Below, piece by piece: positions 47,760-61,200 of a stretch of DNA of 64,000 bases. The stretch spans positions 11,454 through 75,453 of the forward strand of contig NW_005434592.1 in assembly GCF_000315625.1 (NCBI RefSeq). The letters run 5' to 3'. The notes beneath the pieces are model-generated. The model was not told where the DNA came from. It worked only from the letters and a program-made list of their open reading frames with translations, and made no database searches. Source of the DNA: Guillardia theta CCMP2712. Taxonomy: Eukaryota > Protista > Cryptophyta. The translations under genes were made by a program, and so were the position numbers. The first letter of the stretch is position 1. Each line of letters starts with the position of its first letter.

Positions 47760-48535
47760 TCATCATCATCATCATCAACAACAACAACAACAACAGCAAC
47801 TTTCCTACTTTTCCCTGCCTGGTCTCATTTCTTCACAGGCCTCTCGTCGTGCTCCTTCCCTCCTTTGGAACCTCGCTACTTGAGATCAAGGTCCCGCCTC
47901 CTGCTCCTCTAGACGTCAGCCTGACCGTTGCGAGCAGGAAAAAATCTCCCAGGACTCTAAAGTGAAGGTGACAGGAAGGAGTGCACTTGTGCTGGAGGGC
48001 GACGTTTCCATCCAAGGTGTCTTCCTTCACCTTATCCTCTCCTCCCCCCTGCTCTGCCCTTCTTCCTCTCCATCCTCTTCCAACTAACTCATCTCCTCTT
48101 CCCAACCCACCTCCTCTCCTTGCTCATACAATCGCAGGAACTCTCGAGCTCGACGGGGCGCTGGTTGTCCGCGCAGCTCCAGGGGCGAAAGTCGTGATCC
48201 AAAGTCTCCTCGTGCACAACGCGGGTGATGGAGGAGGAGGATAAGCACAAGAGCTGAAGAGGATGGCAGGATGGCGACTGGAGAAGACTGAGGACGAAGA
48301 AACTATGAGCGACGACATGCTGAAAATGAGGGGCTACAAGGTTTCTTCCTTCATTCCCTCCCTTCCTCCACCTGCACTCTCACCTATATCCCTCACGCTA
48401 TCTCCATCTCCTCCCTCCCTCCCTCCTCCTCCTATGCTTGCTGGCGCTCTTGCTCACAGATCATGGCAGGTTGTTCGCACGGAGACGAGGGAGATTCTCG
48501 TCACGGAGCCAGGGGTCCACACCATCTCGCAATAG
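43585..48535 (+). CDS. USP: UDP-sugar pyrophosphorylase (many exons)
   Basis: [110 protein letters not shown]. Confidence 0.93.
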
Positions 48536-48736
48536 CTAGCAAACCAGCGAAATCGCCTTGCGGGGACGGAAGCGAGGCAATCGAGATTGTAGGATTTACT
48601 TCACGCTGCATGCTTGCACCTGGTTGTCACATACAAACAGGAAAGCATCAATCACGTAGCGACCATCATGAACACAACCGTCATCCTGTCATCCTCACAC
48701 CCTTCTCAAGCACCATCAGCCATTGAGATCATGCCG

Positions 48737-50003
48737 TCACCGCATCCCTGTCGATCCAAACCCCATGGAACCTCTGCAGGTAGGAGGAGGCGTCAGCAAA
48801 CAGATCCCCCCCCCCCCTGCCGTCGGCTCGCCTGTCCGTCTCGTCCAGGTTGTCCACCACAGCAACAGGAGGCGTCGCGCACACCTCGAGGATCAACTGA
48901 CATATCAGAGTCACTTCAGCTACTCGCATGCACATCATGCACAACTTGCGCTATCCTCATCCCGGGTTCGATCGCAAAGTCTTCATCGCCTGCATACAGT
49001 CAAGACTGGCGAGACAGCTGCTTCCGCCTCCCCACCATGGTTGAACAACAAGACTTTCACTTCCCCCCTGCCACCTCAGGTTACGTCTCCTCCTCCTTCC
49101 CTCTTGCCATGTTGACGGTCACCTGTAGTCCGGGTCGATGACCCCCGCTCCTACATCGATCGAGTTCTTGACCGCCAACCCTTGACGGCACCCCCTTCAC
49201 GTCCCTGCTACCCTCGACATTGCAAGCACCTGATCGAGGTGCGATCCTTCCGTAGCATCCGCGCGGGATGGCGACGGCGACTCCAGTGCCAACAACAGCA
49301 GAGGACCTGTTGCGAGGCAACTTACAAGCGTCCTTGCGAGTACCGTACCTCCACCTCCCCTTCACCACCGTCGCAGCTGCACTGTACACATCGTATCCCA
49401 CCGCTCCTTCGGTAGCTCTGCATGGTGCCCTGCGCCTGATCTCAGCCCTGCAAGCATGGGAGTTTGTGAAGGTTCTGACTTAGCGCTCTTGTCGACGAGC
49501 ATGATCCTTAACGGGCCTCTGACGTCTGTGTTTCCATCTACTTCCCCACCTCCTCCTCTGAGCATCGACATGGCAATTCGCAGCTGGTCGTTCCTTCCTC
49601 GACAACTCAGAGCCTGTACAAACCTTCCACGGTGGAGCAGAGGATTTACTAGCCCAGAGCTGTGAACATAACAGCAATCACTCCCGAGGCCATGTAGAGC
49701 AAGACTCAGCACGACCTGCGAAAAGATGTTACGAGAACAACAACATCTCTAATCCTCATCTGCTCCCTCAAGTCAAGGTTGTGCAGTCTTCAATTTGTCC
49801 CCTTCTCTTCAGAACTAAATCCCATCGATCCAAACCTTTCTCTCTACATTCTCTGTCTCCTTCTCATGTGACTGCAAGCTCTACTTGCTAATCTCTCCAT
49901 CATCCCTCACACACTACTCCTTCTCCACCCACTCCTCCTCCTCCTCCTCCTCCTCCTCCTCCTCCTCCCGTCATCTGCTACTCACACGCAGACTCCCTGC
50001 CAT
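48737..50003 (-). CDS. DUT: dUTP diphosphatase (dUTPase) with N-terminal targeting leader
   Basis: Motifs GYDVYS, GRIAPRSG, GVIDPDY-GEVKVLLFN, RIAQLI and GFGSTG; short first exon MAGSLR followed by a GTGAGT donor; leader contains MLRGG. Confidence 0.9.
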
Positions 50004-51172
50004 GAACGCGATGGTCTTATTGCTCGCTCAGTAGCACCGCCGGGCCCGGGAGGCCCGGAATATCTACCCACCCACCCCCTTTCAATCTGTTTAAGTACCG
50101 GTGGCGTTTCCCAGATGGGAGCAATATCACATTTCGCTGTGGTTTGAGCGGATTCGGGTGGGGAGGGAGGGAGAGAGAGAGAGAGAGAGGAGGAAGGTGG
50201 AAGAAGGAGGGCGTGAGTGAGGGAGCGAGTGAGGTATGCTGGGATGCATGAGGAGGGAGTGGGATAGGCGATGGAGGGCGGGGGGGGGGGGAGGGGCGGG
50301 AGGGCAGAGGCCGAATGGCGAAACCAGGAAGTGTGACGGTGAAGAGTTGGAAGAGAGGGCAGCGCAAGTTGGCAACAGAACACACCCCTGGCCATCCTTC
50401 TATTGCAATAACTGCTCTCCTCCTTGTAGTTTTGATTGGCACCGAGCTTGTCCTCAGCATGGTTGCGGAGAAGGTCGTCCAGGTACTGGATCTTGCAATT
50501 CAACACTTCATTAATTTCGATCTCAAGGGCTCTGCTTTCAAGCCCAAGGGAGTGATTCAGGGCTCTGTCATACCTGGTACTTGCTGCTGCATGAACAGAA
50601 GGTTGTGTGAGATGGTTGATAGATGCGGTGACGTGGACAACCTGGGAGGTGGACTTCACTGCCAGTACCTGGTAGGAGAGCGGAAGAGAGGTTGAGAAGT
50701 TGATTCTGGTGAAGGGGAATCAAGGCTGCGATGGACAAAGTGAATAACGACATCAGATTCAAGTATCCTCTCATCATCACCGAAGTCGTGTTTCCATCGG
50801 AGGCGCATAAACTGGCAATTTCCCAACCATCGCATTGGTGTGTTGGTGACTTTTCAGCAGGGCATTATGATTGGTGATCACATCGTTGGAGTGAAGTCGC
50901 CAGACGCAGCTGACTTTATGTTTGTACCTCACTTGCCAAAGAGAGCTTCTTACACGTTCATTAGTGATATCGCGAATGCGAATGAGAAGAATCCCATGGT
51001 AGTAGACATCTTGTGGGACTGCGTGAGCTGACTTTCAAGAAAAGTCCCGGGAACGATACGTCCTTGATTCTGTCCGGGATATTTTGATGCAGGGCGGAAA
51101 TGTACTTTCTTACCTTCTTGTCTACCTCAAGTGACAGATTTGTCTGTCTAGTGTACCGTCCGCTTCACGCGA

Positions 51173-52944
51173 ATGCACAGGAGACCTTGTGCTTACTGTG
51201 GAAGCGAATCGCTGATAGAGATACAGGAAGAGGTTGGTGGTCAAGTTGTACTTCCAGCACTGAAAGCTCTTGTCCTTTTGCTAGGGATCCATAGTTTGCT
51301 CCAACTGTGCGATGGAAAACAACGCGCGAATCATGTCCACGCAGGTGAATTCCTTCGACCTATGCCATGCAAGTGATATCCCGCCAGTCCGAATGGCGTA
51401 CCTTCCAAGACGATGATAAGAGCCAGGAAAAGGGAAGGTCTCTTCTCTCGGTCCGATTGATTGGAAGGTGAAAACTGCCGCAGAACTGGTGGTCCTGAAA
51501 ACGCATTGTTGAACAACGATGGGGCACAGGTCGATCTTTGACCTGCTCGTTTTTGGTTTCTGGTGGCGTACATTCACTGACTCCGAATGTTGCAACAGAC
51601 CAAGATAGAAGGAAACGGTAGAAATGGCGATGGTAAATCCTTTCATGCTCTGTTCCATCTTGTCCCAAGACTTTCTAACCCGGAAACCTGTGACAGTCGA
51701 TGTTCTCGGCTCTGCAGCAAACCTGGCGAAGAGCCAGCATAGATTTGGCTCGCAATCTGGAGATCGGTTGTTCATCTTTCTTGGCGGATTTGTTTGTAAT
51801 GCGAGTTTGCAATACGAACAGGGCATTGACCGATGCATACAAAAAAATCGATGAGATTTGTGACACCATGAACCTCTCCTCTGTCATTCGTGGCCAGGTT
51901 TTGATGATCATACAATACTCGAAAACACTACTTACCAACTTTTAGGCCAAACACAACTTCAAAAGCTATGACGAAGAGTCAAAGAAAGTGAGATGGAACC
52001 AACCAAGTCTCCTTAGCATCGCTCGTCACAATGTTTGCAGCAAAAGAAGAAAATCCCCATCGATCCCGTCCTGACCTCGTGCATTTATATTGCTTGCCGA
52101 GAAGAAGGTACTGGCGAGCAGCTTCTTCGGGAGGACTGGTGTGCTAAGGCCAGTCTACTTCAGGATTCCCTCGAACAATGAAGGAGATGTGTGCTGCCAC
52201 AACTCTGACCAAGAAGGAGATTGGGAACGCCTTCAAACACGTATGATATTGCAGCGGTACAGAATGTCAAAGTTATTGTTCTGACAGGTACAGGAACTGA
52301 TCAAGAAGACTGTACAGCCTATGAAGGTGAGGATGTGATCATGGTGGTAGGGATTGACTGACTGTGCGGTCAGGCATCCGACATTATTCCTCGCTTCTGC
52401 TCCAACTTGAACTTGGACGGAAATGTTATCGAGGAGGTAAAAATTTATATCCGTCTACTGTCGTCGTTCCTCCTGCCCTCGCCTTCTTCGTCTTTCTGGG
52501 ATTCTCATTCGCTGCTGGCAGGCTGCGAAGCATATCTGTCAAGCAGCCGATGCTCTCAACATCACTGAGGTCTAAGATCTCTCGAGTGTCTTCGCACCTC
52601 AACTTCAACATACAGGGAAGGGTGTACACGTCCATCGCCTCTGCCGCCATGTTCATGGCCTGTCTTCTGCGACAACGTCTGTTGTTATGATCTGCACTTC
52701 GCTCCTGACGCCCGTGCTCAGGCAACCCGAAGCACTTCAGAAGTTGCAAGCAGATCTCAGACGCTACCGGAGCAGCAGAAGCAACGATCAGGCAGATCTA
52801 CAAGGTGAGTGCGCACGATGTCGTGAGGCAAACTGAAGCTGTTGAGATCAGGAGATGCATGCGAAGCGACACCAGCTTGTCCCTCCAGATTTTGCAACCA
52901 AGGAGGAGATTGACAAACTTCCCGAGGGAGGAGGTGGATTCTGA
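51173..52944 (+). CDS. TFIIB: Transcription initiation factor TFIIB (multi-exon)
   Basis: Zn-ribbon CAYC...CSNC, B-reader SEWRTF, cyclin repeats (CIYIACREE, PRTMKE, KKEIG, IPRFCSNL, GRVYTSIASAAMFMA, TGAAEATIRQIYK). Confidence 0.92.
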
Positions 52945-53109
52945 TGAACCCACGTATCAGATTTCTTCCACTTGCCGAGTTCTACTTCTCATCGGGTCGA
53001 GCTTTTTGCGGTTTTTGCGGCTCCAGCTTGTCATAGATCAGTAGCCTGTCTACTTGAATCTTCTCACCGCGATCTCCAGTGAGATCGGACTGGCGGCTGA
53101 TGACAGGAC

Positions 53110-53280
53110 GGCTAGTATTTATTAGCTAAACGACACAAAATATAAAATTTCAAAATTCTAAATTTTCCGTCGAAATTATGGATCATGGAAGACCCACACG
53201 CCAATATTTCCTTGTGTCTGACTCGTACTTCATCCTTTCCATGAAGAACAGGTTGAAGTATAACCAGACCCATGTGTGAT
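53110..53280 (-). ncRNA. Candidate Fanzor omegaRNA scaffold / transposon right end
   Basis: Directly downstream of the Fanzor stop codon, with complementary segments 53226-53232/53254-53260, 53183-53190/53237-53244, 53132-53143/53204-53218 and 53195-53199/53274-53278. Confidence 0.6.
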
Positions 53281-54000
53281 TCAAGGCCGTTTCAGAAAAT
53301 CCGGTCGTGCTGGTAGAGACATGTAGCACAATAGAATATTCATAGCAGCATTGATATCACGAGACTTGATACGGTTTTGAACACAATTGGTGGATCTGCA
53401 CCATTTCAAACCCCGCACCACTGACACTTCGTCAGCGAGTATACCATTCTTGTTGATTTTTTTGCGTTTCAAATCATACAATTCTTGATGACATTGATTG
53501 CAACATTCTGTCGTTCTGTATTCATCAACTGCCGTCACCTCGAAGAAGTTCTGACATCGCCTTTTGATCCATTTTACAGGCACTGACTTCTCTCCACGCC
53601 CAGTACAACCAAATGATGCATCACCGTATGCAATTATTGGATTTTGATCTGAACCGTTACCGTCTTTCATCTTCTTGAAGAACGTATCAATCGCCTTGTG
53701 TTTGTGGATGTAGTTATCCATCTTCAGGCGTGCGAACTTGTTTTGACAATTGTGTTCGAACAGGATCTCGCTTAGTCTCACCACGGTGTCGATGTATCTT
53801 TCATAGTGATCCAACCGAGACGTTTTTGCGGACACTCTTGCAATATCGCTTGATTCTTCTGTTATGCCTTGTCTCCATTTTTCGAACTTGGCGTTATTCC
53901 GAGTAATATGAAACTCATGATAGTACTGCCTTCGAGTATATCGATACTGCTTTGGTTTTTCTTGACCAGGTATTTGCTCGACACCGCATATCAGTACACT
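53281..54000 (-). pseudogene. Fanzor (eukaryotic TnpB/Cas12-like RNA-guided nuclease), 5'-truncated
   Basis: Intronless AT-rich ORF with YRYTRRQYY, IIAYGDASF..TGRGE..VP, RuvC-II VDEYRTT, Zn-finger CCNQC...LKWCRSTNC, RuvC-III RDINAAMNI and terminal RPDFLKR. There is no ATG, and the RuvC-I D(PG) motif and N-terminal lobe are absent. Confidence 0.88.
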
Positions 54001-54004
54001 GCGA

Positions 54005-54285
54005 CCACCTCGACTCTCCTGATCCGACAAGTCCTCGTCATGGCGTACTGATCAGTTTTTAACTTAACTTTGAGTAAAGGTCAGCCCGGCGCCGCGGGCC
54101 CGCCCTGAGTCGCCCGGCAGCCCGGGCTCAGAGTCCGATCAATGCTCAGTCAAGGGGTCGTGTAAAAGTTCCTCCGACCGTCGTTCGAGCTCGCCGCGCA
54201 CCCAGTATAAAAAATCTATACAAATTCAGCCAATTTTACTCAAAGTTAAGTTAAAGATCATACTATGATAACGAGGGCAAATTCA
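54005..54285. mobile_element. MITE-like element with 21-bp perfect inverted repeats abutting the Fanzor
   Basis: TTTAACTTAACTTTGAGTAAA at 54058-54078 and its reverse complement at 54235-54255 flank a GC-rich core; the same terminus occurs at 3729 and 153. Confidence 0.6.
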
Positions 54286-55290
54286 GCCATGTGGGGGACG
54301 CGGGCCCGGTAATTGCGCCCAGAAGGTGAAAGAATAATAAAGACGTTAATCGTATGACTGCGGGTCCGTGCGAAGAGGGAGGGGTTGGACCCTCTGTCAC
54401 CGTCCGACACCGCAATTAAGAAAAGTGACACCCTGACAGGGGGGCCTTTCACCCTCCAGCCCCTGTGCGGCCGCTCAAACCGTGGCATCTACAGTTTATA
54501 TCAGTGGCCAAAATGGGAGGCGGACGGTGATCCTGCCTGAAATATGCTCTCAAATTTGAAATTAACACTGTCAAAAGATTCGAAACCGAAGCTCCTTTTA
54601 AGGAAAACAAGTGATCTCTGGGGAATCCATCCCACCCCACCCCACCTGGGCCCTGGAGTAAGAACTACCCTACCCCCAGGATAAAAATCGATGCGCACTC
54701 CTTGCGCTTTTCGGACCAGAACCCCCCCGACCTAGGTCAATACTATGATGTTCCCACCCCGTGATCTCACCGACCACCCCCACCCTGTCAGTGGCTGTCA
54801 TCTCGAGACGACCCATCACACCACCCCCCTCAAAGTTCGGGGACTGGAACGTTGGAGCTTATCCACATCTTAAAACAATTTTGATTTGGGGTTGGGTGGC
54901 TAAGTTAATTCGCCCTAGAAGTGGGGGTGAAAAGTCACTACAATGGAGGGGTGATGAGAAAGAGAGTTAGATTCAGTGGGTGGGGTACAAGTTGGATTGC
55001 CCCTCCGGGATTGAGCAGTCACATGCAATGCTAGTCAGTGGTGCAGAGCGACAAAGAACTGGAGAAATCTCCCTGGAAGGAGCGAGAGAGAATGGGAAGA
55101 AGGCGATAGAGTAGAAATATCCATAAACTATCAGGGACACGCATCGTTTTGAGGTGTGACTGAAGTGAAACCGAGAAGAAGAAGAGGTAAGAACTCGACA
55201 TCGTAATTCTTGAGATTCACTGAACAATTCCTCTGTAGTCCTTGCCGAATCGTAATCCATCAAAAGACTACATCTCGATATGAAACAAGC

Positions 55291-58200
55291 ATGATTTCTT
55301 TCAGTATCCAACTTTCCTGCTTTCTTACCTTGTTATCATGCTTGGTTTTGTCCACAAATGGATTGGAACAAGTGATATCAGCAGCTTCCATACGTCAGAC
55401 CAATCCTCTCGCAAACGATAACAATCTTTTGATTCTTTCTCTTACAATTGCACAGAATGTTGAAACACGATCAAACTTTTCTGTTTGTGCTTTTTCTGGC
55501 CTTGACTATGCTGTTGGGCAAAGCGTACCCACAGTTTCAAGTCCGCAGCTTTCGCTGACAAGCTCCTGGAATGCAGCCTCCTGCTTGTTGTTTTCGAACA
55601 CTGAAATCATCCAATCTCAAGCAACAGCATATCAGATTTCATTCTCAGTCAAGAACCAGAACCTGGCGCATCAGGGCAGCAGTTCATTGACTCTTAGCCT
55701 CAATGCAGTGAACGTGCCCCTCACTGTCATCTATGCAGATGTCCTGGGTGTTCTGAACGGCTCTGTCCCAGGGAAGACTGTCATTCCTTCGTTGATCTTT
55801 GCTTCTATCCGTCAATCGAGTGCACTGGCAAACATCAGCAACAGAGTTTCGATTGTTCTACGACCCAATGTGCATTTTGACACTGGATCCATTTTTACAC
55901 TCACTGGATTTAGCGCCATCTGGGATTATGTCGATTCTTGTTATTCATATCAGCTACCTCAAGGGGAGGAGACAACAACATCCACGACTACTCCAGCTCC
56001 AACTACAACATCCACGACTACTCCAGCTCCAACTACAACATCCACGACTACTCCAGCTCCAACTACAACATCTACGACTACCCCAGTTGAAACAACAACA
56101 TCTACGACTACCCCAGTTGAAACAACAACATCTACGACTACCGCAGCTGGAACAACAACATCTACGACTACCCCAGTTGCAACGACGTTATCCACGACAA
56201 CTCAAGCTGCAACAACGTTGTCGACGACTACCCCTGCTGAAACGTTGTCGACGACTACCCCTGCTGAAACAACATCCACGACTACCCCAGCTGAAACAAC
56301 AACATCCACGACTACCCCAGCTGAAACAACAATGTTCGATGAAACTACTTCTTTGGCTGCAAATGAGGCCAGCTCAACTCCCAGCGCCGAGGAGAGCAGC
56401 TCAACTGCGATGCTGGAGAGCAGCTCTTCGTCGACGCCTGCAGAGCAGCTCTTCGTCGACGCCTGCAGAGGTCGAGAGCAGCTCAACTGCAATGCTGGAG
56501 AGCAGCTCTTCGTCAACGCCTGCAGAGGTCGAGAGCAGCTCAACTGCAATGCTGGAGAGCAGCTCGTCGTCAACGACTGCAGAGGTCGAGAGCAGCTCAA
56601 CTGCAATGCTGGAGAGCAGCTCTTCGTCGACGCCTGCAGAGGTCGAGAGCAGCTCAACTGCAATGCTGGAGAGTAGCTCTTCGTCAACGACTGCAGAGGT
56701 CGAGAGCAGCTCAACTGCGATGCTGGAGAGTAGCTCCTCCTCCACACCCTTGGAGAGCAGCTCGTCGTCTACACCAGCACCATTGGAAACAAGTGCGTTC
56801 TCTACGTCCGCGTTAGAGTCCAGTTCCTCCTCCACACCCTTGGAGAGCAGCTCTTCGTCGACAACAATGCAGGCGTTAGAGACCAGCACAGATTGGACGA
56901 CCCCCGCTCCCAGCAGCAGCAGAAGGAGGCTGTTGAGCTCCGCCGCTTCGAATGATCAGCAGAATGTTGTCTATTCCACAGCAGCCGTGTGCCAGCAGAA
57001 GCAGATCCAGTTTGCATCAGCTCAGGCTGACCAGTCTTGGTCCGCGTCAGAAGTAACTTTCGGAGGCAGAGCCGTGATTCTTCGTACTGGCGAGCTCTTG
57101 CTGGTTGCCAACTCGAGCTTCGATCAGTACGAGGCTCTCGTCGCTTTCGAGCTCACAAACCCGGTGGTCGAACGGGCTCCATCGAGTTTTCTCGTCCAGG
57201 GAAGGCTCGTGGTGAGTGGAAATCGTTATTCTCTGCCATCGCAAGGGGTCACGTTGAGCTCCCAAGCCATCGGAGGTGTGAAGGACGCCTCCAACCCGTT
57301 CAAGGTTCATGTCCCAAAGATCCTCTTCGCCCACATCCAGCACTCGAGATCAGTCTCGTTCATGCAAAATACGATCTCGATGGAGATGAGAGTGGACGTG
57401 GATATGACGAACCGTTCTTACCTCTACATCACAGGCATTCCCGACCAACTCTACGTCTACAATGAAGCGAAGGCACCAGCTTACAGCAACCTTGACAGCG
57501 CGATTGAGGTGAAGCAAGTGGCCGATGGCTTCACCGTCAAGGTGTTAGACCTCATCGCTGTCAACACGAGCATCCGTGTGTGGGTGCCCGTCACGAACAG
57601 CCAAGGTCAGCGGCTAGAGGGATGCAACGTGTCGGTCGAGGGAGGAGTCGGAGTCGGAGACAGGATCTCTCTCTTGTCAAAGACTCGCATGACGACCGAG
57701 ACCGACACGAGCGGCCGCATCTGCTTGCTTGTCGCCCCGAAGGTTGTATCACCGACGGTGTCATCAGCGAACCCGCTGGTGGGCTCGCTGAACCGTCTGA
57801 ACCTCAAGTTTGCTTTCAATGTCGAGCTCAGAGGGAGCGATGGGCTCAAGTTCAGGCTTCGCTCGCCTCTGCTGCAGTCGCCGCTCACCAGCGGGTCTCT
57901 CAACTTCACCTCTCAAGACGGCAGGGTGCAGACTTTCCGCAACGTGACGACAGGCGAAGATTACCTTGAGTTTGCGATGGAGGCCTCTGACGCGATGAAG
58001 GCAAACGTCAACTACTATCTCGTCGTCGAGGTCAGGAACCCGTCCTACGTCCTTCGAGCCCCCAACGTCTCCATGGACATCACAAGCTCGAAGAGCAACA
58101 ACTTCGCCCTGGCCTTCAACTTCACCCCGGTGGCTGCTTCCAACCCCTACGGGATCTCGTTGCAGGATCCTCTTGACACATGGGCTCCTGTCATCGTCAA

Positions 58201-61200
58201 CGCGTCTATCTATCAGAGCTCTCCTCTCACCGACGCTTCCAACACTCTCACGGTCTCTGTGAAGACCAACACCTTCCTCGTCCAAGGCTCTCGCTTGACT
58301 CTCAGCGGCTTGTGCGGCATGGCGGATGACATCGCGACTGTGAATGCTGCTGCTTTCAGGGTGACCTCTACCTCTGCGAGCGGGTGTTTCATAGTGGTGG
58401 AGGCGACGAGCGACCGGAGCAGCTTCGTCGTCATGCTGGATGTGACAGTGAGAAACGGAGGGAGCGAGCAGGTAGCCGTCAGCCCCACGCTGAGCGGGTT
58501 CATCGAGAGCGGCGTATGGGACGCGAGCTTGAGCTCGGTGTCGCTGCTTCAGCAGCCTTCCTCTCGGTTCGGCATTGAGGGAGGCTCGTTACCCCTCAAG
58601 ATTGTTCGTCCTCGCATCTCCTCTTGGAGCTTCGAGCAATCCTCTCCCTTCGTGGGCTCATCCAACCAGCTCACTCTCAGCCTCACCCTCAACGTCGCAC
58701 TCACCGTCGGGTCTCAACTCTTCCTTGCAAACTGGCCTGCACAGCAAGTCTCGCAGGCTGCGTCGCTGTCGTCTGCATGGCAGGTTGTCAACATCAGCTC
58801 CAACTCCTCCTTCAAGTTCCTGGGAGGTGACAACCAACCTCCTTATGTCCTCCTCTTGAGCATCAGAAACAGTCAGACCCCCCTGTCCTCCCCGTCTGAC
58901 TTTCCCGCCCGCCTCATGGTGGAGTGCGGGCTGTACGACTCCTGGTCAGAAGTGACCGCCATAGCTGGGACCCAGCAGGACCTTTTCCTGGTCCCGGGCG
59001 GGCGGAAGCCATTCTTGACAGTGATGCCGGAGATACAGGAGGCGACGATCTCGCAGACGATTCCCTTCACCAGCTCGCCCAACGTGATCTCCCTGCACGT
59101 CGTCTCCAGGTTCGCCATCACCAAGGACTCGCGGCTGCTCATCACCCCAGCTCCCTCGTGTGTGCCAACGCTGCTCGACGACTCCTTCACGAGCATCAGG
59201 GATAATACTCTAGTGCTGACGCTCTCGGGGTCGAACGTCTCCGCCTTCAATGTGTCGTTCCGCGTCATCAACGGCGACTGCGAGCAGGCGGACAGGCAGT
59301 TGCAGGTCAAGCTGGTGGAGGAGCTGGGAGTCTTCGACTCTGAGAGTGAGACGAGGGCGATGCTGATGGATCGCTCGACCCTCTTCGGCGTCATCAATGG
59401 CAGCAGCCCCTTCGTGACTTACCGTGCGACGATCACCAAAGCTCTCGTCTACCAAGACAACCCGATCGTCGGTCAGCTCAACAACGTGAGTTTGTCCCTT
59501 CGCTTCAACTTCGAGACGCCCAAGCAGGCAAGCTGCACCATCACCGGGATGAGCATGTTCGACCAGCAGCAGGGCGTCGTGAGCGTCAGACAGTCTCCGG
59601 CCAGCCTGATCAACTCGAGCCGCCTGGTGGGAGGGAGCCTGGTGCTCAGCAACTTTCTGCAGACTTTGCCAGCTGGCGACGACCTGAACGTGACGGTCGT
59701 GCTGGTCAACGGAGCGAAAGAGAGCAATGCAGCTGCAGTGTCGGTCACGTGCTACCTGGATCCGATCGTGACCGGGTTGAAGGTGACTAGCGAGTTCTCG
59801 TCGCGTTCTGTCTCTGTGTTTGGAGTGGCAGGAGGGTCTCTCGTCGGGAAGCTGGTGCAACCAGGGTTTGACCTGCTCGCGGGCATCCAGAAGAACCCGC
59901 TGGTGATGAAGGAGAACAAGCTCGTGTTCAGCATCTCCTGCAACATCGACTTTGCTGTGGGATCAACGATGACGCTGCGTGGGCTGGTGGGACTTCCAGC
60001 ACTCTACAACGTCTCGTCGGAGTTTGCTGTGCTGAATCGTACCTTGAGCGATGAGCTGATTGTCATCGCGCACATGGACATGTATGCGAGTGAGACTTAC
60101 TTTCTCAACTTGTCGTTGATCAACCCCGACCAAGAGCAGAACTCTCCTCCTCTCAAGCTCAGGGCGACGCTTGTGGTCCAGGCGAGCTATGCAGCTTTAC
60201 ACCTGCCGTTGGCGGAAGCTCTCGTCAGCAAGCCAGGAATCACCGTCATCGGTATCCCCGGTGGTTATGACCCGCTCAAGATTTTCCGAGCCAACTTCAC
60301 GATCGATCAACTCTCGCAGGTGACCATGTTGTTCTGCCGCGCGACGGTCTTCAGGATCTTCTTCTCCTTCAACTGCGACATCCTGCCAAATTCCTCGCTC
60401 ACCGTCAGCTTCCCTGCTCATGCCCTTGCCAGTCTGCTGGCTACCGCAGACTACTACCGCGCGCCCAACAGCAAGGCTGTCGTGGTTGTCAGCCAATTAG
60501 GACAGCTCGCGCAAGTGTCGAAGGGAATTCAGCTGGATGTTCCTGACACGTCGACGTCTGCTCTGAGCCCCTTCAGTCTCGCTTCTCATGTCTTGACCAT
60601 CTTCGGTCCCGTCGCCTTCCCCGAGCTGAAGCTGAACGTGACGGTAAGCGCTGGGCCTCCGCTTTCCTTGGCCTTGACTGATCTCTCGTGCTGCAGTCAA
60701 GTGTGCAAGAGATCAACCTCATGGTCCATCAGCTTGCCTTCGCCTTCGATGCCATCAGCGACCGTCGAGTTGTCTACGTCCAGGACTTGAACCTTGCAGG
60801 AAACTCTTCATGCACACAGGTGCTGACGTGGCAGTTGTCGGAATGTTCGCTTCTCACCCTAATGGCAGGACTTCTTTCAAGTGACCACCTTCACAGTGTC
60901 AGGCAGTATCGATCCGAGCTTCTCCCTGGCTCCCAAGATCAATCAATCAGGTCTGCCTGTCCTCCCTGTCCTCAAGAGCCTCAACCTGACCATGCCGCAG
61001 GGTACTTGTCCTTCCGGATATCAAACTCAGAGCCCGACGAAGGTTCTTCGATCGAGTTCGACCTGCTGATAACCGCCAACTTGTACGATGCGAATCTTAG
61101 CAGCGCTGTCCAGTCCTTGGATAGTCGCGTGCGAGTGATCGTCATGGGAAGACCTCGCTGTCCGGTCCAGGTGTGGTACAATTATGCAGGGTCGTTGGCG

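Follow-up and report, generated by a model that had tools for sequence, protein, structure and literature searches.

What is the short, AT-rich open reading frame (ORF) that lies tail to tail with a TFIIB-like gene in the genome of Guillardia theta CCMP2712? We analyzed the whole 64-kb stretch of DNA that contains it (here called the window; G000:C82:11454-75453) and searched the 87.1-Mb, 669-contig assembly to which the window belongs. A first-pass annotation of the window had read the ORF as a remnant of a Fanzor, an RNA-guided nuclease of the TnpB type. We found that the interval from 53120 to 54007 on the minus strand is very probably a dead, 5′-truncated copy of a recently active, nonautonomous mobile element of ~2.75 kb that encodes a 642-amino-acid (aa) Fanzor1 protein. 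The observations behind this reading are the homology of the ORF, its fold, the breakpoint, the copy numbers of the family, and the absence of copy-specific sense RNA in one raw RNA run. The window copy retains only the last 241 codons of the gene, which hold the RuvC-II Glu, the TNB zinc finger, and the RuvC-III Asp, together with a complete structured 3′ tail. Because promoter region, start codon, WED/REC lobes, and RuvC-I Asp are all missing, it cannot yield an active nuclease.

Sequence and predicted fold point to a Fanzor1 nuclease

We compared the ORF with all PDB sequences by phmmer. The sole significant match was SpuFz1 of Spizellomyces punctatus (E 4.5e-5), and the alignment ran from the YRYT motif to the RD motif. 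GtFz1, a Fanzor1 from G. theta itself, was not found in this search. A Pfam scan of the ORF gave Cas12f1-like_TNB (PF07282) with E 3.8e-4 and 21 bits, under the 26.3-bit cut-off; the same family scored above the cut-off in three relatives (P0012, P0023, and P0003). No family was matched in a scan of the ORF against NCBIfam.

The predicted fold gave the same picture. The AlphaFold2 (AF2) model of the 249-aa fragment had a predicted local distance difference test score (pLDDT) of 90.2, and in Foldseek (E values from 1e-9 to 4e-6) it was led by SpuFz1 (E 1.2e-9, TMq 0.72), GtFz1 (E 4.9e-8), and PpFz1. Cas12f, Fanzor2, and TnpB came after these three Fanzor1 structures. We also modeled the 642-aa paralogue encoded elsewhere in the genome (AlphaFold, pLDDT 85.5). 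It superposed on SpuFz1 over the whole protein (E 3e-20, TM 0.65-0.71 both ways); PpFz1 and GtFz1 were matched as well, and Fanzor2 and TnpB scored far lower. Searched against the PDB with phmmer, the full-length paralogue returned nothing at E<=1 even though the fragment and the profile described below do match, and we took this to be a filter artefact.

Alignment A1, which we built from 21 sequences, combines the 642-aa protein with a second G. theta subfamily and with relatives found in a search of 5.8 billion proteins, in which the best named relative was a Hanusia phi protein with 38% identity. The A1 profile matched SpuFz1 with E 1.5e-37 over profile positions 13-588, PpFz1 with E 4.6e-31, and GtFz1 with E 7.5e-23, the weakest score among the three solved Fz1 proteins. 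The match to mimivirus Fanzor2 (E 2.8e-4) covered the TNB region only. D401, E563, and C604 were invariant in A1, and the RuvC-III Asp, D618, was present in at least 90% of the sequences.

Every motif that the first-pass annotation had listed was found in the ORF at the positions it gave (Table 1), in the order YRYTRRQYY, AYGDASFGCTGRGE, VDEYRTT, cysteines, SRDINAAMNI. The canonical RuvC-II position of the remnant reads AYGDA, with a nonacidic residue there. The alternative, rearranged RuvC-II Glu is a known Fanzor feature (PMC10530073); in the ORF it is E170, whose column is invariant in A1 and in alignment A2 and aligns with DEYKTS of SpuFz1. C211 is likewise invariant, and R-D-x-N-A is almost so in A1 and A2. 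From RuvC-II to RuvC-III, the remnant reads TT-E-C-C-x2-C...C-x4-C...SRD, which matches the C4 and RD pattern of Fanzor1 given by Bao and Jurka as D-x-[TS][TS]-x-x-C4-x-RD (PMC3627910). The RuvC-I Asp (xIDPG), invariant as D401 in full-length paralogues and relatives, is missing from the window copy. Because this residue is lost, the remnant is a fragment of a Fanzor1 member and not a functional member. The WED/REC lobes are also absent.

Taken from sequence and models, these results support a TnpB/Fanzor derivation of the window ORF, in agreement with the first-pass annotation; RuvC/TnpB matches came from both the profile and the Foldseek searches. We infer from homology and fold that the intact paralogues would be omegaRNA-guided RuvC double-strand DNA endonucleases of the SpuFz1/PpFz1/GtFz1 kind. 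The AT richness of the ORF was also borne out: its GC content is 41.3%, compared with 52.2% for positions 48000-53000, 54.3% for positions 54100-60000, and 53.2% for the whole window.

The element copy breaks off beside the RuvC-I aspartate

The interval matched nine other loci of the same genome by BLASTN over 888-899 bp with 97.3-97.5% DNA identity, and because of this identity the match is not due to chance. Its right end is whole and terminates in ...GTTTAGCTAATA at 53120 (+/-1), as set by flank comparison. On the other side, homology to the element ends at 54007. This position falls in the Pro codon immediately after the catalytic RuvC-I Asp of ...IAIDPGRN... (GAT CCT GGT, with the break between CC and T), 3 nt past the Asp codon. 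In the window, GAGTCGAGG is joined to TGGTCGCAGTGTACTG at this point; in full copies, ATCGATCC is followed by TGGTCGCAATGTACTG. The protein of the paralogue at L002 reads ...RRVIAIDPGRNVLICGVEQ... where the window reads ...SRGGRSVLICGVEQ.... We searched the whole window by BLASTN against 10-kb pieces around full copies and found no further pieces of the element, no upstream exons, and no displaced 5′ part. The loss of RuvC-I and of the REC/WED lobe, which the first-pass annotation had inferred, is thus what the breakpoint gives. DNA contigs of run X14, which may be the assembly's own data, span both junctions of the remnant without differences.

The annotation had described the locus as an intronless ORF of 249 aa. 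The open frame is real, but it is an untranslatable gene fragment rather than a gene. Only codons 9-249 are of Fanzor origin, and codons 1-8 come from an unrelated repeat that resembles a miniature inverted-repeat transposable element (MITE). The apparent start is a TTG, which counts as a start only under the bacterial code used to list ORFs. Codons 1-103 include no in-frame ATG, and codon 104 (53721-53719) is the first.

The end of this MITE-like repeat abuts the truncation point. Its other copies run on from ...GAGTCGAGG into AGGCTTGACCCTGACACTGTC, where the window passes into Fanzor sequence. At least 13 further loci carry the repeat, which is found in both orientations, and in the window its 21-nt arms at 54058-54078 and 54235-54255 are perfectly inverted (TTTACTCAAAGTTAAGTTAAA). 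At these arms, the DNA contigs are joined in many alternative ways.

Intact and truncated paralogues share one right end

A six-frame search of the genome with the ORF gave 85 protein-level matches. Intact copies, whose existence the first-pass annotation had thought possible, are present: at a minimum of seven loci the frame is open for 644-646 codons (ORFs of 642-646 aa), with 95-96% aa identity over codons 9-249, and the ORF at L002 (L002:1501-3426, minus strand) has 642 aa. The full element is ~2.6-2.85 kb long: a ~665-bp 5′ region, which includes a variable tandem repeat of ~88 bp, is followed by an intronless ORF and a 162-nt tail. Its ends are TGGTTAAGTGACAC... on the left and, in all copies, the same right terminus as in the window. 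The current full copies are 98-99.9% identical to one another.

The two ends are not equally frequent. We found 21 right-end motifs and 8 left-end motifs in the genome, and 13 of the 21 right ends had no left end; the left-end motif was found in the family's own copies only. At least eight copies combine an intact right end with differing 5′ break points, and one of them (C7) is 100% identical to young copies. This pattern points to a family that would spread by copying begun at the 3′ end.

The 5′ junction could be resolved in seven copies, and in each of them the element is preceded by (C/T)ATA plus one variable base and opens with TGGTTAAG...; six begin at the common terminus, and L036 has its first 8 nt replaced. 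At L031:7617-8162 (G000:C14), a full-length copy sits at the edge of a 73-bp tandem array whose unit contains the preceding ATA (..CCATATATTTTAC..). Because the ATA belongs to the array unit there, it is host sequence and not part of the element. Duplications directly after ATA were seen in two truncated copies, TAAGAGG (7 bp) in L036 and GAGGTATA (8 bp) in L053. These were the only clear duplications among ~10 truncated copies examined, and most of the others had none. The ATA...ATA flanks are compatible with a TA duplication but are not diagnostic of one.

The terminal inverted match of the family is imperfect (11/16), a possible 5′ terminal hairpin is no better than shuffles (z -0.5), and we identified no asymmetric terminal inverted repeats (TIRs). 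A Tc1/mariner origin of the family was considered and is not supported, given the imperfect terminal match and given that the genome has just two DDE_3 matches, both of which belong to GtFz1 loci. RepHel (Helitron_like_N, PF14214) had no match in the six-frame genome search, which had no positive control and would see a gene exon by exon, so that absence is not proven. We did observe five PIF1 matches in the genome. One, at G000:C167:96936-97394 on the minus strand, falls within an open frame of 1255 codons. Frames of that length are unusual in a genome so rich in introns, and the match is possibly a transposon helicase.

RNA and sequence divergence at the window copy

We mapped one raw RNA run (60-nt reads, poly(A)/3′-biased, with RNA sense judged by A-tails) and two probable RNA contig sets on positions 52500-54500. 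In the raw run, sense depth over the remnant was 0-1.4, compared with 100-185 for the neighboring gene. At site 53302, the only diagnostic site with at least three reads, 5/5 reads carried the paralogue letter. We found no copy-specific sense transcripts of the remnant in this run, whose library would miss small RNAs, and no evidence in the RNA data that the fragment is expressed as a gene. The only spliced joint there is that of a 54-nt GT..AG intron (53709>53764) on the plus strand, antisense to the remnant, which was present in contigs of two runs and in one raw read. Because this sole splice joint is on the plus strand, transcription across the remnant looks antisense. The antisense RNA is probably read-through from the neighboring gene.

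Compared with young full copies, the window copy has 20 substitutions at positions fixed in all full copies compared and an in-frame GAC insertion at 53662-53664. Relative to L031, our reference copy, the coding part differs by 17 substitutions, 10 nonsynonymous and 7 synonymous. At nine differing positions, the window copy has the letter common to other old copies (C3, C1, C62, and C176); these letters are ancestral subfamily states. The changes private to the window copy number ~10-12, and the coding ones among them are roughly 7 nonsynonymous to 3 synonymous, counts that are too small for a formal test. The private substitutions fit neutral decay of a copy made from an older master than that of the current burst.

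How the fragment arose and whether it works

Several observations weigh against reading the interval as a dead copy that was truncated when it inserted. Contigs of the sets X1 and X4, whose label as RNA is a guess, contain window-specific sequence from 53407 to 54025 without differences at a low depth of 8-13, so that the remnant may be transcribed to some extent. The overall ratio of nonsynonymous to synonymous change (pN/pS), 0.38, could on its own hint at constraint. We found no target-site duplication at the window copy. Finally, a deletion after insertion explains the break equally well, because the 5′ partner is itself a truncated repeat. As to pN/pS, about half of the differences are ancestral, and what the ratio records is therefore mainly the selection that acted on the master lineage.

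The strongest competing explanation is that the truncation is secondary, namely, that a full-length insertion was followed by a deletion or a rearrangement with the MITE-like repeat that removed the first 1871 bp. We rate this a real contender, a little short of even. It would account for the cut junction partner at 54008-54079 and for the lack of a duplication around the copy. We also looked beyond the remnant for a resumption of the 5′ flank, which would have been proof that the copy was already truncated when it entered the MITE-like repeat, and found none. In contrast, the 21 right ends versus 8 left ends argue that at least some copies were truncated as they inserted, as do the two truncated copies with 7- to 8-bp duplications after ATA. 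Nothing separates abortive insertion from later deletion for the window copy itself. Because 5′ truncation with an intact 3′ end is the norm of the family, we consider the fragment most likely an abortive product of a copying process begun at the 3′ end, with later deletion also possible.

A second alternative concerns the 3′ tail. An omegaRNA at the 3′ end with its guide in the flank is known for SpuFz1, GtFz1, and CrFNuc (PMC10432273; PMC10530073), and by analogy the tail is likely an omegaRNA scaffold with the guide in the flank. The remnant could then be a working "ghost" guide locus, in which the tail is transcribed and processed into an omegaRNA, the flank from 53119 downward (AATACTAGCCGTCC..., in the 3′ untranslated region [UTR] of the TFIIB-like gene) serves as guide, and this RNA is taken up in trans by the Fanzor1 of intact paralogues. 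The tail is complete to its terminus and has just 3 substitutions relative to young copies. Its RNA fold has a z-score of -3.3 against shuffles (-3.4 for the tail of the full copy at L031), and a 42-nt hairpin at 53131-53172 ends 11 nt (11-12) before the terminus (DNA hairpin z -1.9). The last 17 nt are nearly the same in subfamily A (GTGTCGTTTAGCTAATA) and in a subfamily ~45% identical in protein over the ORF-matching region (GTGGCGTTTATCTATTA). Standalone omegaRNA ghost loci are documented for SpuFz1 (PMC10432273), and the many right ends without a left end would suit such a role. On the other hand, the locus has no promoter-bearing 5′ region, the convergent TFIIB-like transcript overlaps the final 43 nt, and sense raw reads over the tail were only 0.3-1.4 deep, the diagnostic ones coming from other copies. 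This depth is weak evidence either way, because a poly(A)/3′-biased 60-nt library misses small RNAs. We regard a working guide locus as unlikely. A search of 52800-54400 against Rfam matched no family and gave only two subthreshold chance matches to small nucleolar RNAs. We considered covariation between the subfamily A and C tails and do not claim it; the terminal motif is kept, yet the predicted topologies differ.

Least credible of all, with hardly any weight in our judgment, is a domesticated protein translated from the remnant (146 aa from the ATG at 53721, or longer from a non-AUG start) that would act as a zinc-finger or dominant-negative partner of intact Fanzors: the 249-codon frame is still open after 2.3-2.7% divergence, pN/pS is 0.38 overall, and the AF2 fragment model is confident, but 103 codons lack an in-frame ATG, the first eight codons come from the repeat, sense RNA specific to this copy was not seen, 17 substitutions would be expected to leave the frame open by chance, the private changes are mostly nonsynonymous and include an inserted codon, and the comparable truncated copies elsewhere have different break points, a pattern that decay or abortive copying would leave and domestication would not.

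The convergent TFIIB-like gene ends inside the remnant

The first-pass annotation had placed the ORF tail to tail with TFIIB. The neighbor is indeed a convergent, spliced, and expressed gene on the plus strand, with a depth of up to 185. Its identity as TFIIB is less firm: its C terminus and one exon are TFIIB-like, and a Pfam scan of three exons gave only PF00382 with E 0.032, below the cut-off. In the raw run, 38 reads carried untemplated A-runs after 53162, and an X1 RNA contig ends there. The remnant therefore supplies the polyadenylation site of the TFIIB-like gene. The site falls within the AT-rich terminal hairpin of the element. At site 53141, 42/119 reads showed the letter of other copies; this is unexplained and could reflect other loci or a strain difference.

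Table 1. Features of the Fanzor1 remnant and its surroundings (positions in the window)
Feature	Position	Strand	Details
5′-truncated copy of ~2.75-kb Fanzor1 element, last 888 bp	53120..54007	(-)	Element positions 1872-2757 of 2757; BLASTN
Remnant open frame	53281-54030	(-)	249 codons; ORF listing
Remnant coding sequence, C-terminal RuvC lobe and TNB domain	53284..54006	(-)	241 codons; residues 403-642 of the 642-aa protein, with an extra Asp codon inserted
YRYTRRQYY motif, T32-Y37	53937-53920	(-)	Read in ORF
AYGDASFGCTGRGE motif	from 53631	(-)	Read in ORF
Rearranged RuvC-II Glu, codon GAA, in VDEYRTT directly ahead of zinc module	53521..53523	(-)	E170 of ORF = E563 of full protein
TNB zinc module, C176/C177-x2-C180 ... 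C211-x4-C216	53383..53505	(-)	CC-x2-C, 53505-53491; C-x4-C, 53400-53383
RuvC-III Asp, codon GAT, in SRDINAAMNI	53356..53358	(-)	D225 of ORF = D618 of full protein
Noncoding 3′ tail and right end, candidate omegaRNA scaffold	53120..53280	(-)	~160 nt; 162 nt in full element
End of unrelated MITE-like repeat abutting truncation point	54008..54079	(-)	Own-genome DNA search, alignment to 8 other loci
Introns of TFIIB-like gene	52568-52613, 52677-52721, 52803-52849	(+)	RNA mapping
Stop codon of TFIIB-like gene	52942-52944	(+)	
3′ UTR of TFIIB-like gene, 218 nt	52945..53162	(+)	Last 43 nt (53120-53162) and poly(A) site inside remnant

Other Fanzor1 lineages of G. theta and their relatives

The first-pass annotation had left open whether the window copy belongs to the GtFz1 family, and our results speak against it. 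The published start of the GtFz1 omegaRNA, NW_005434667:896451 (PMC10432273), coincides exactly with G000:C7:896451, by which we recognized the assembly as that of G. theta CCMP2712, and its second occurrence is only at C345:6940, so that GtFz1 lies on two other scaffolds only. GtFz1 has an Asn at the third catalytic position, N658 (PMC11423790). There it reads NRNVAGAFNIL, compared with RD(V/I)NAAMNIL in the window family. Judged by these sequences, the window family is a Fanzor1 lineage separate from GtFz1 and by far the more abundant one in the genome.

The two GtFz1 loci had a feature of their own. The genome has just two matches to DDE_3 (PF13358, Tc1/mariner-type), one in the region G000:C7:893922-896603 and one in G000:C345:4420-6969. 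Each contains one in-frame TAG and lies ~2.1-2.5 kb upstream of a GtFz1 omegaRNA start, with the GtFz1 gene following immediately. For GtFz1, Saito et al. (2023) had described no clear link to a transposase.

We also observed a third G. theta Fanzor1 subfamily (subfamily C), with at least 12 copies that are ~99% identical and a tail of ~370 nt, compared with 162 nt in the window's family. Its right end terminates in ATTA, and that of subfamily A in AATA. At L018:1440-1500 (G000:C111), a 61-nt GT..AG intron between ...KFCRSS and CKGKPIKSRDLNAALNIL is needed to reach the RuvC-III motif. Apparent 5′ truncations in this intron-containing subfamily were rejected as 5′-leader indels or an assembly gap.

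The right-end motif of the window family was absent from its metagenome relatives. One metagenome contig (L059:1-3000; relative P0005, 32% identity) has 28-nt perfect terminal inverted repeats (TACACCGTTTTTCATCCTGAATGAAACA) that enclose a DDE_3 transposase at 40-1020 on the minus strand and a Fanzor1 gene at 1091-2803 on the plus strand. In its makeup it resembles an autonomous Tc1/mariner-type element that carries a relative of the window family.

Comparison with described Fanzor1 elements

SpuFz1 (PDB 8GKH, 9CEU-9CEZ) is the best match in sequence and fold for both the remnant and the full paralogue. The two have in common the RuvC triad of D...E(rearranged)...D and the TNB zinc module between RuvC-II and RuvC-III, and their sizes are close (633 aa for SpuFz1, 642 aa for the family), although their identity is only ~15-23%. 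Unlike SpuFz1, the protein fragment of the window copy is missing its N-terminal 60%. The TIRs of SPu-1 elements measure 33 bp and are accompanied by TA duplications (PMC3627910); the window family has instead only the 11/16 match and a strong excess of right ends. The S. punctatus ghost omegaRNA loci (Saito et al., 2023) resemble the window copy in having a right end and an omegaRNA-like tail without a functional Fanzor gene. They keep both inverted repeats and were shown to be transcribed, whereas the window copy has the right end only, and its tail is a candidate omegaRNA.

GtFz1 (FZID83; PDB 9CER-9CET), from the same genome, has the same Fanzor1 architecture and fold as the window family. 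It occurs at two loci (C7 and C345) compared with the 21 right ends of the window family, and its target-adjacent motif (TAM) is TTAA-like, whereas the window family sits after ATA.

In their distribution, the copies resemble CRe-1/2/3 (CrFNuc) of Chlamydomonas reinhardtii, Fanzor1 elements that are nonautonomous Helitron2 (Bao and Jurka, 2013, PMC3627910; PMC10530073). Bao and Jurka read the pattern of CRe-1/2/3 as copying begun from the 3′ end (PMC3627910). The two families are alike in the overabundance of 3′ ends with frequent 5′ truncation. They may also be alike in full copies that lie directly downstream of a fixed short motif without a duplication and in truncated copies that can bear duplications of variable length starting after the same motif. 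Both have an element that begins with T, and the subterminal 3′ hairpin and the structured RNA of the 3′ UTR have predicted counterparts in the window family. The window family differs from CRe-1/2/3 in that its motif is ATA and not TTTT, its gene is intronless, and no RepHel match was found in the G. theta genome.

Implications

The window remnant is ordinary: it is a decaying transposon fragment of the kind expected wherever a Fanzor family was active. Its poly(A) site for the TFIIB-like gene illustrates, on a small scale, how transposon sequence can be put to use by a host gene.

For G. theta, the findings add to the studied GtFz1 a second, much more abundant Fanzor1 lineage and related sublineages. 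Because it has seven intact ORFs, the canonical RuvC-III Asp, and near-identical copies, the family is a ready candidate for omegaRNA and TAM characterization. It also permits a comparison within one genome with the unusual Asn-bearing GtFz1.

For Fanzor elements more broadly, the family may spread without RepHel or any other transposase, by one-ended copying anchored at the right end, that is, at the omegaRNA module, and perhaps started by Fanzor cleavage beside an ATA-type TAM; the remnant would then be one of ~13 abortive products with a usable guide module. We offer this as a speculation that is improbable on present grounds. If true, it would tie an RNA-guided nuclease directly to the propagation of its element in a eukaryote, an open question for Fanzors. 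The 3′-anchored truncation signature has so far been described for the Helitron2-borne Fanzors of Chlamydomonas. Here it is present with no RepHel detected, which is relevant to the movement of Fanzor elements said to "lack IRs and transposase association" (IRs, inverted repeats).

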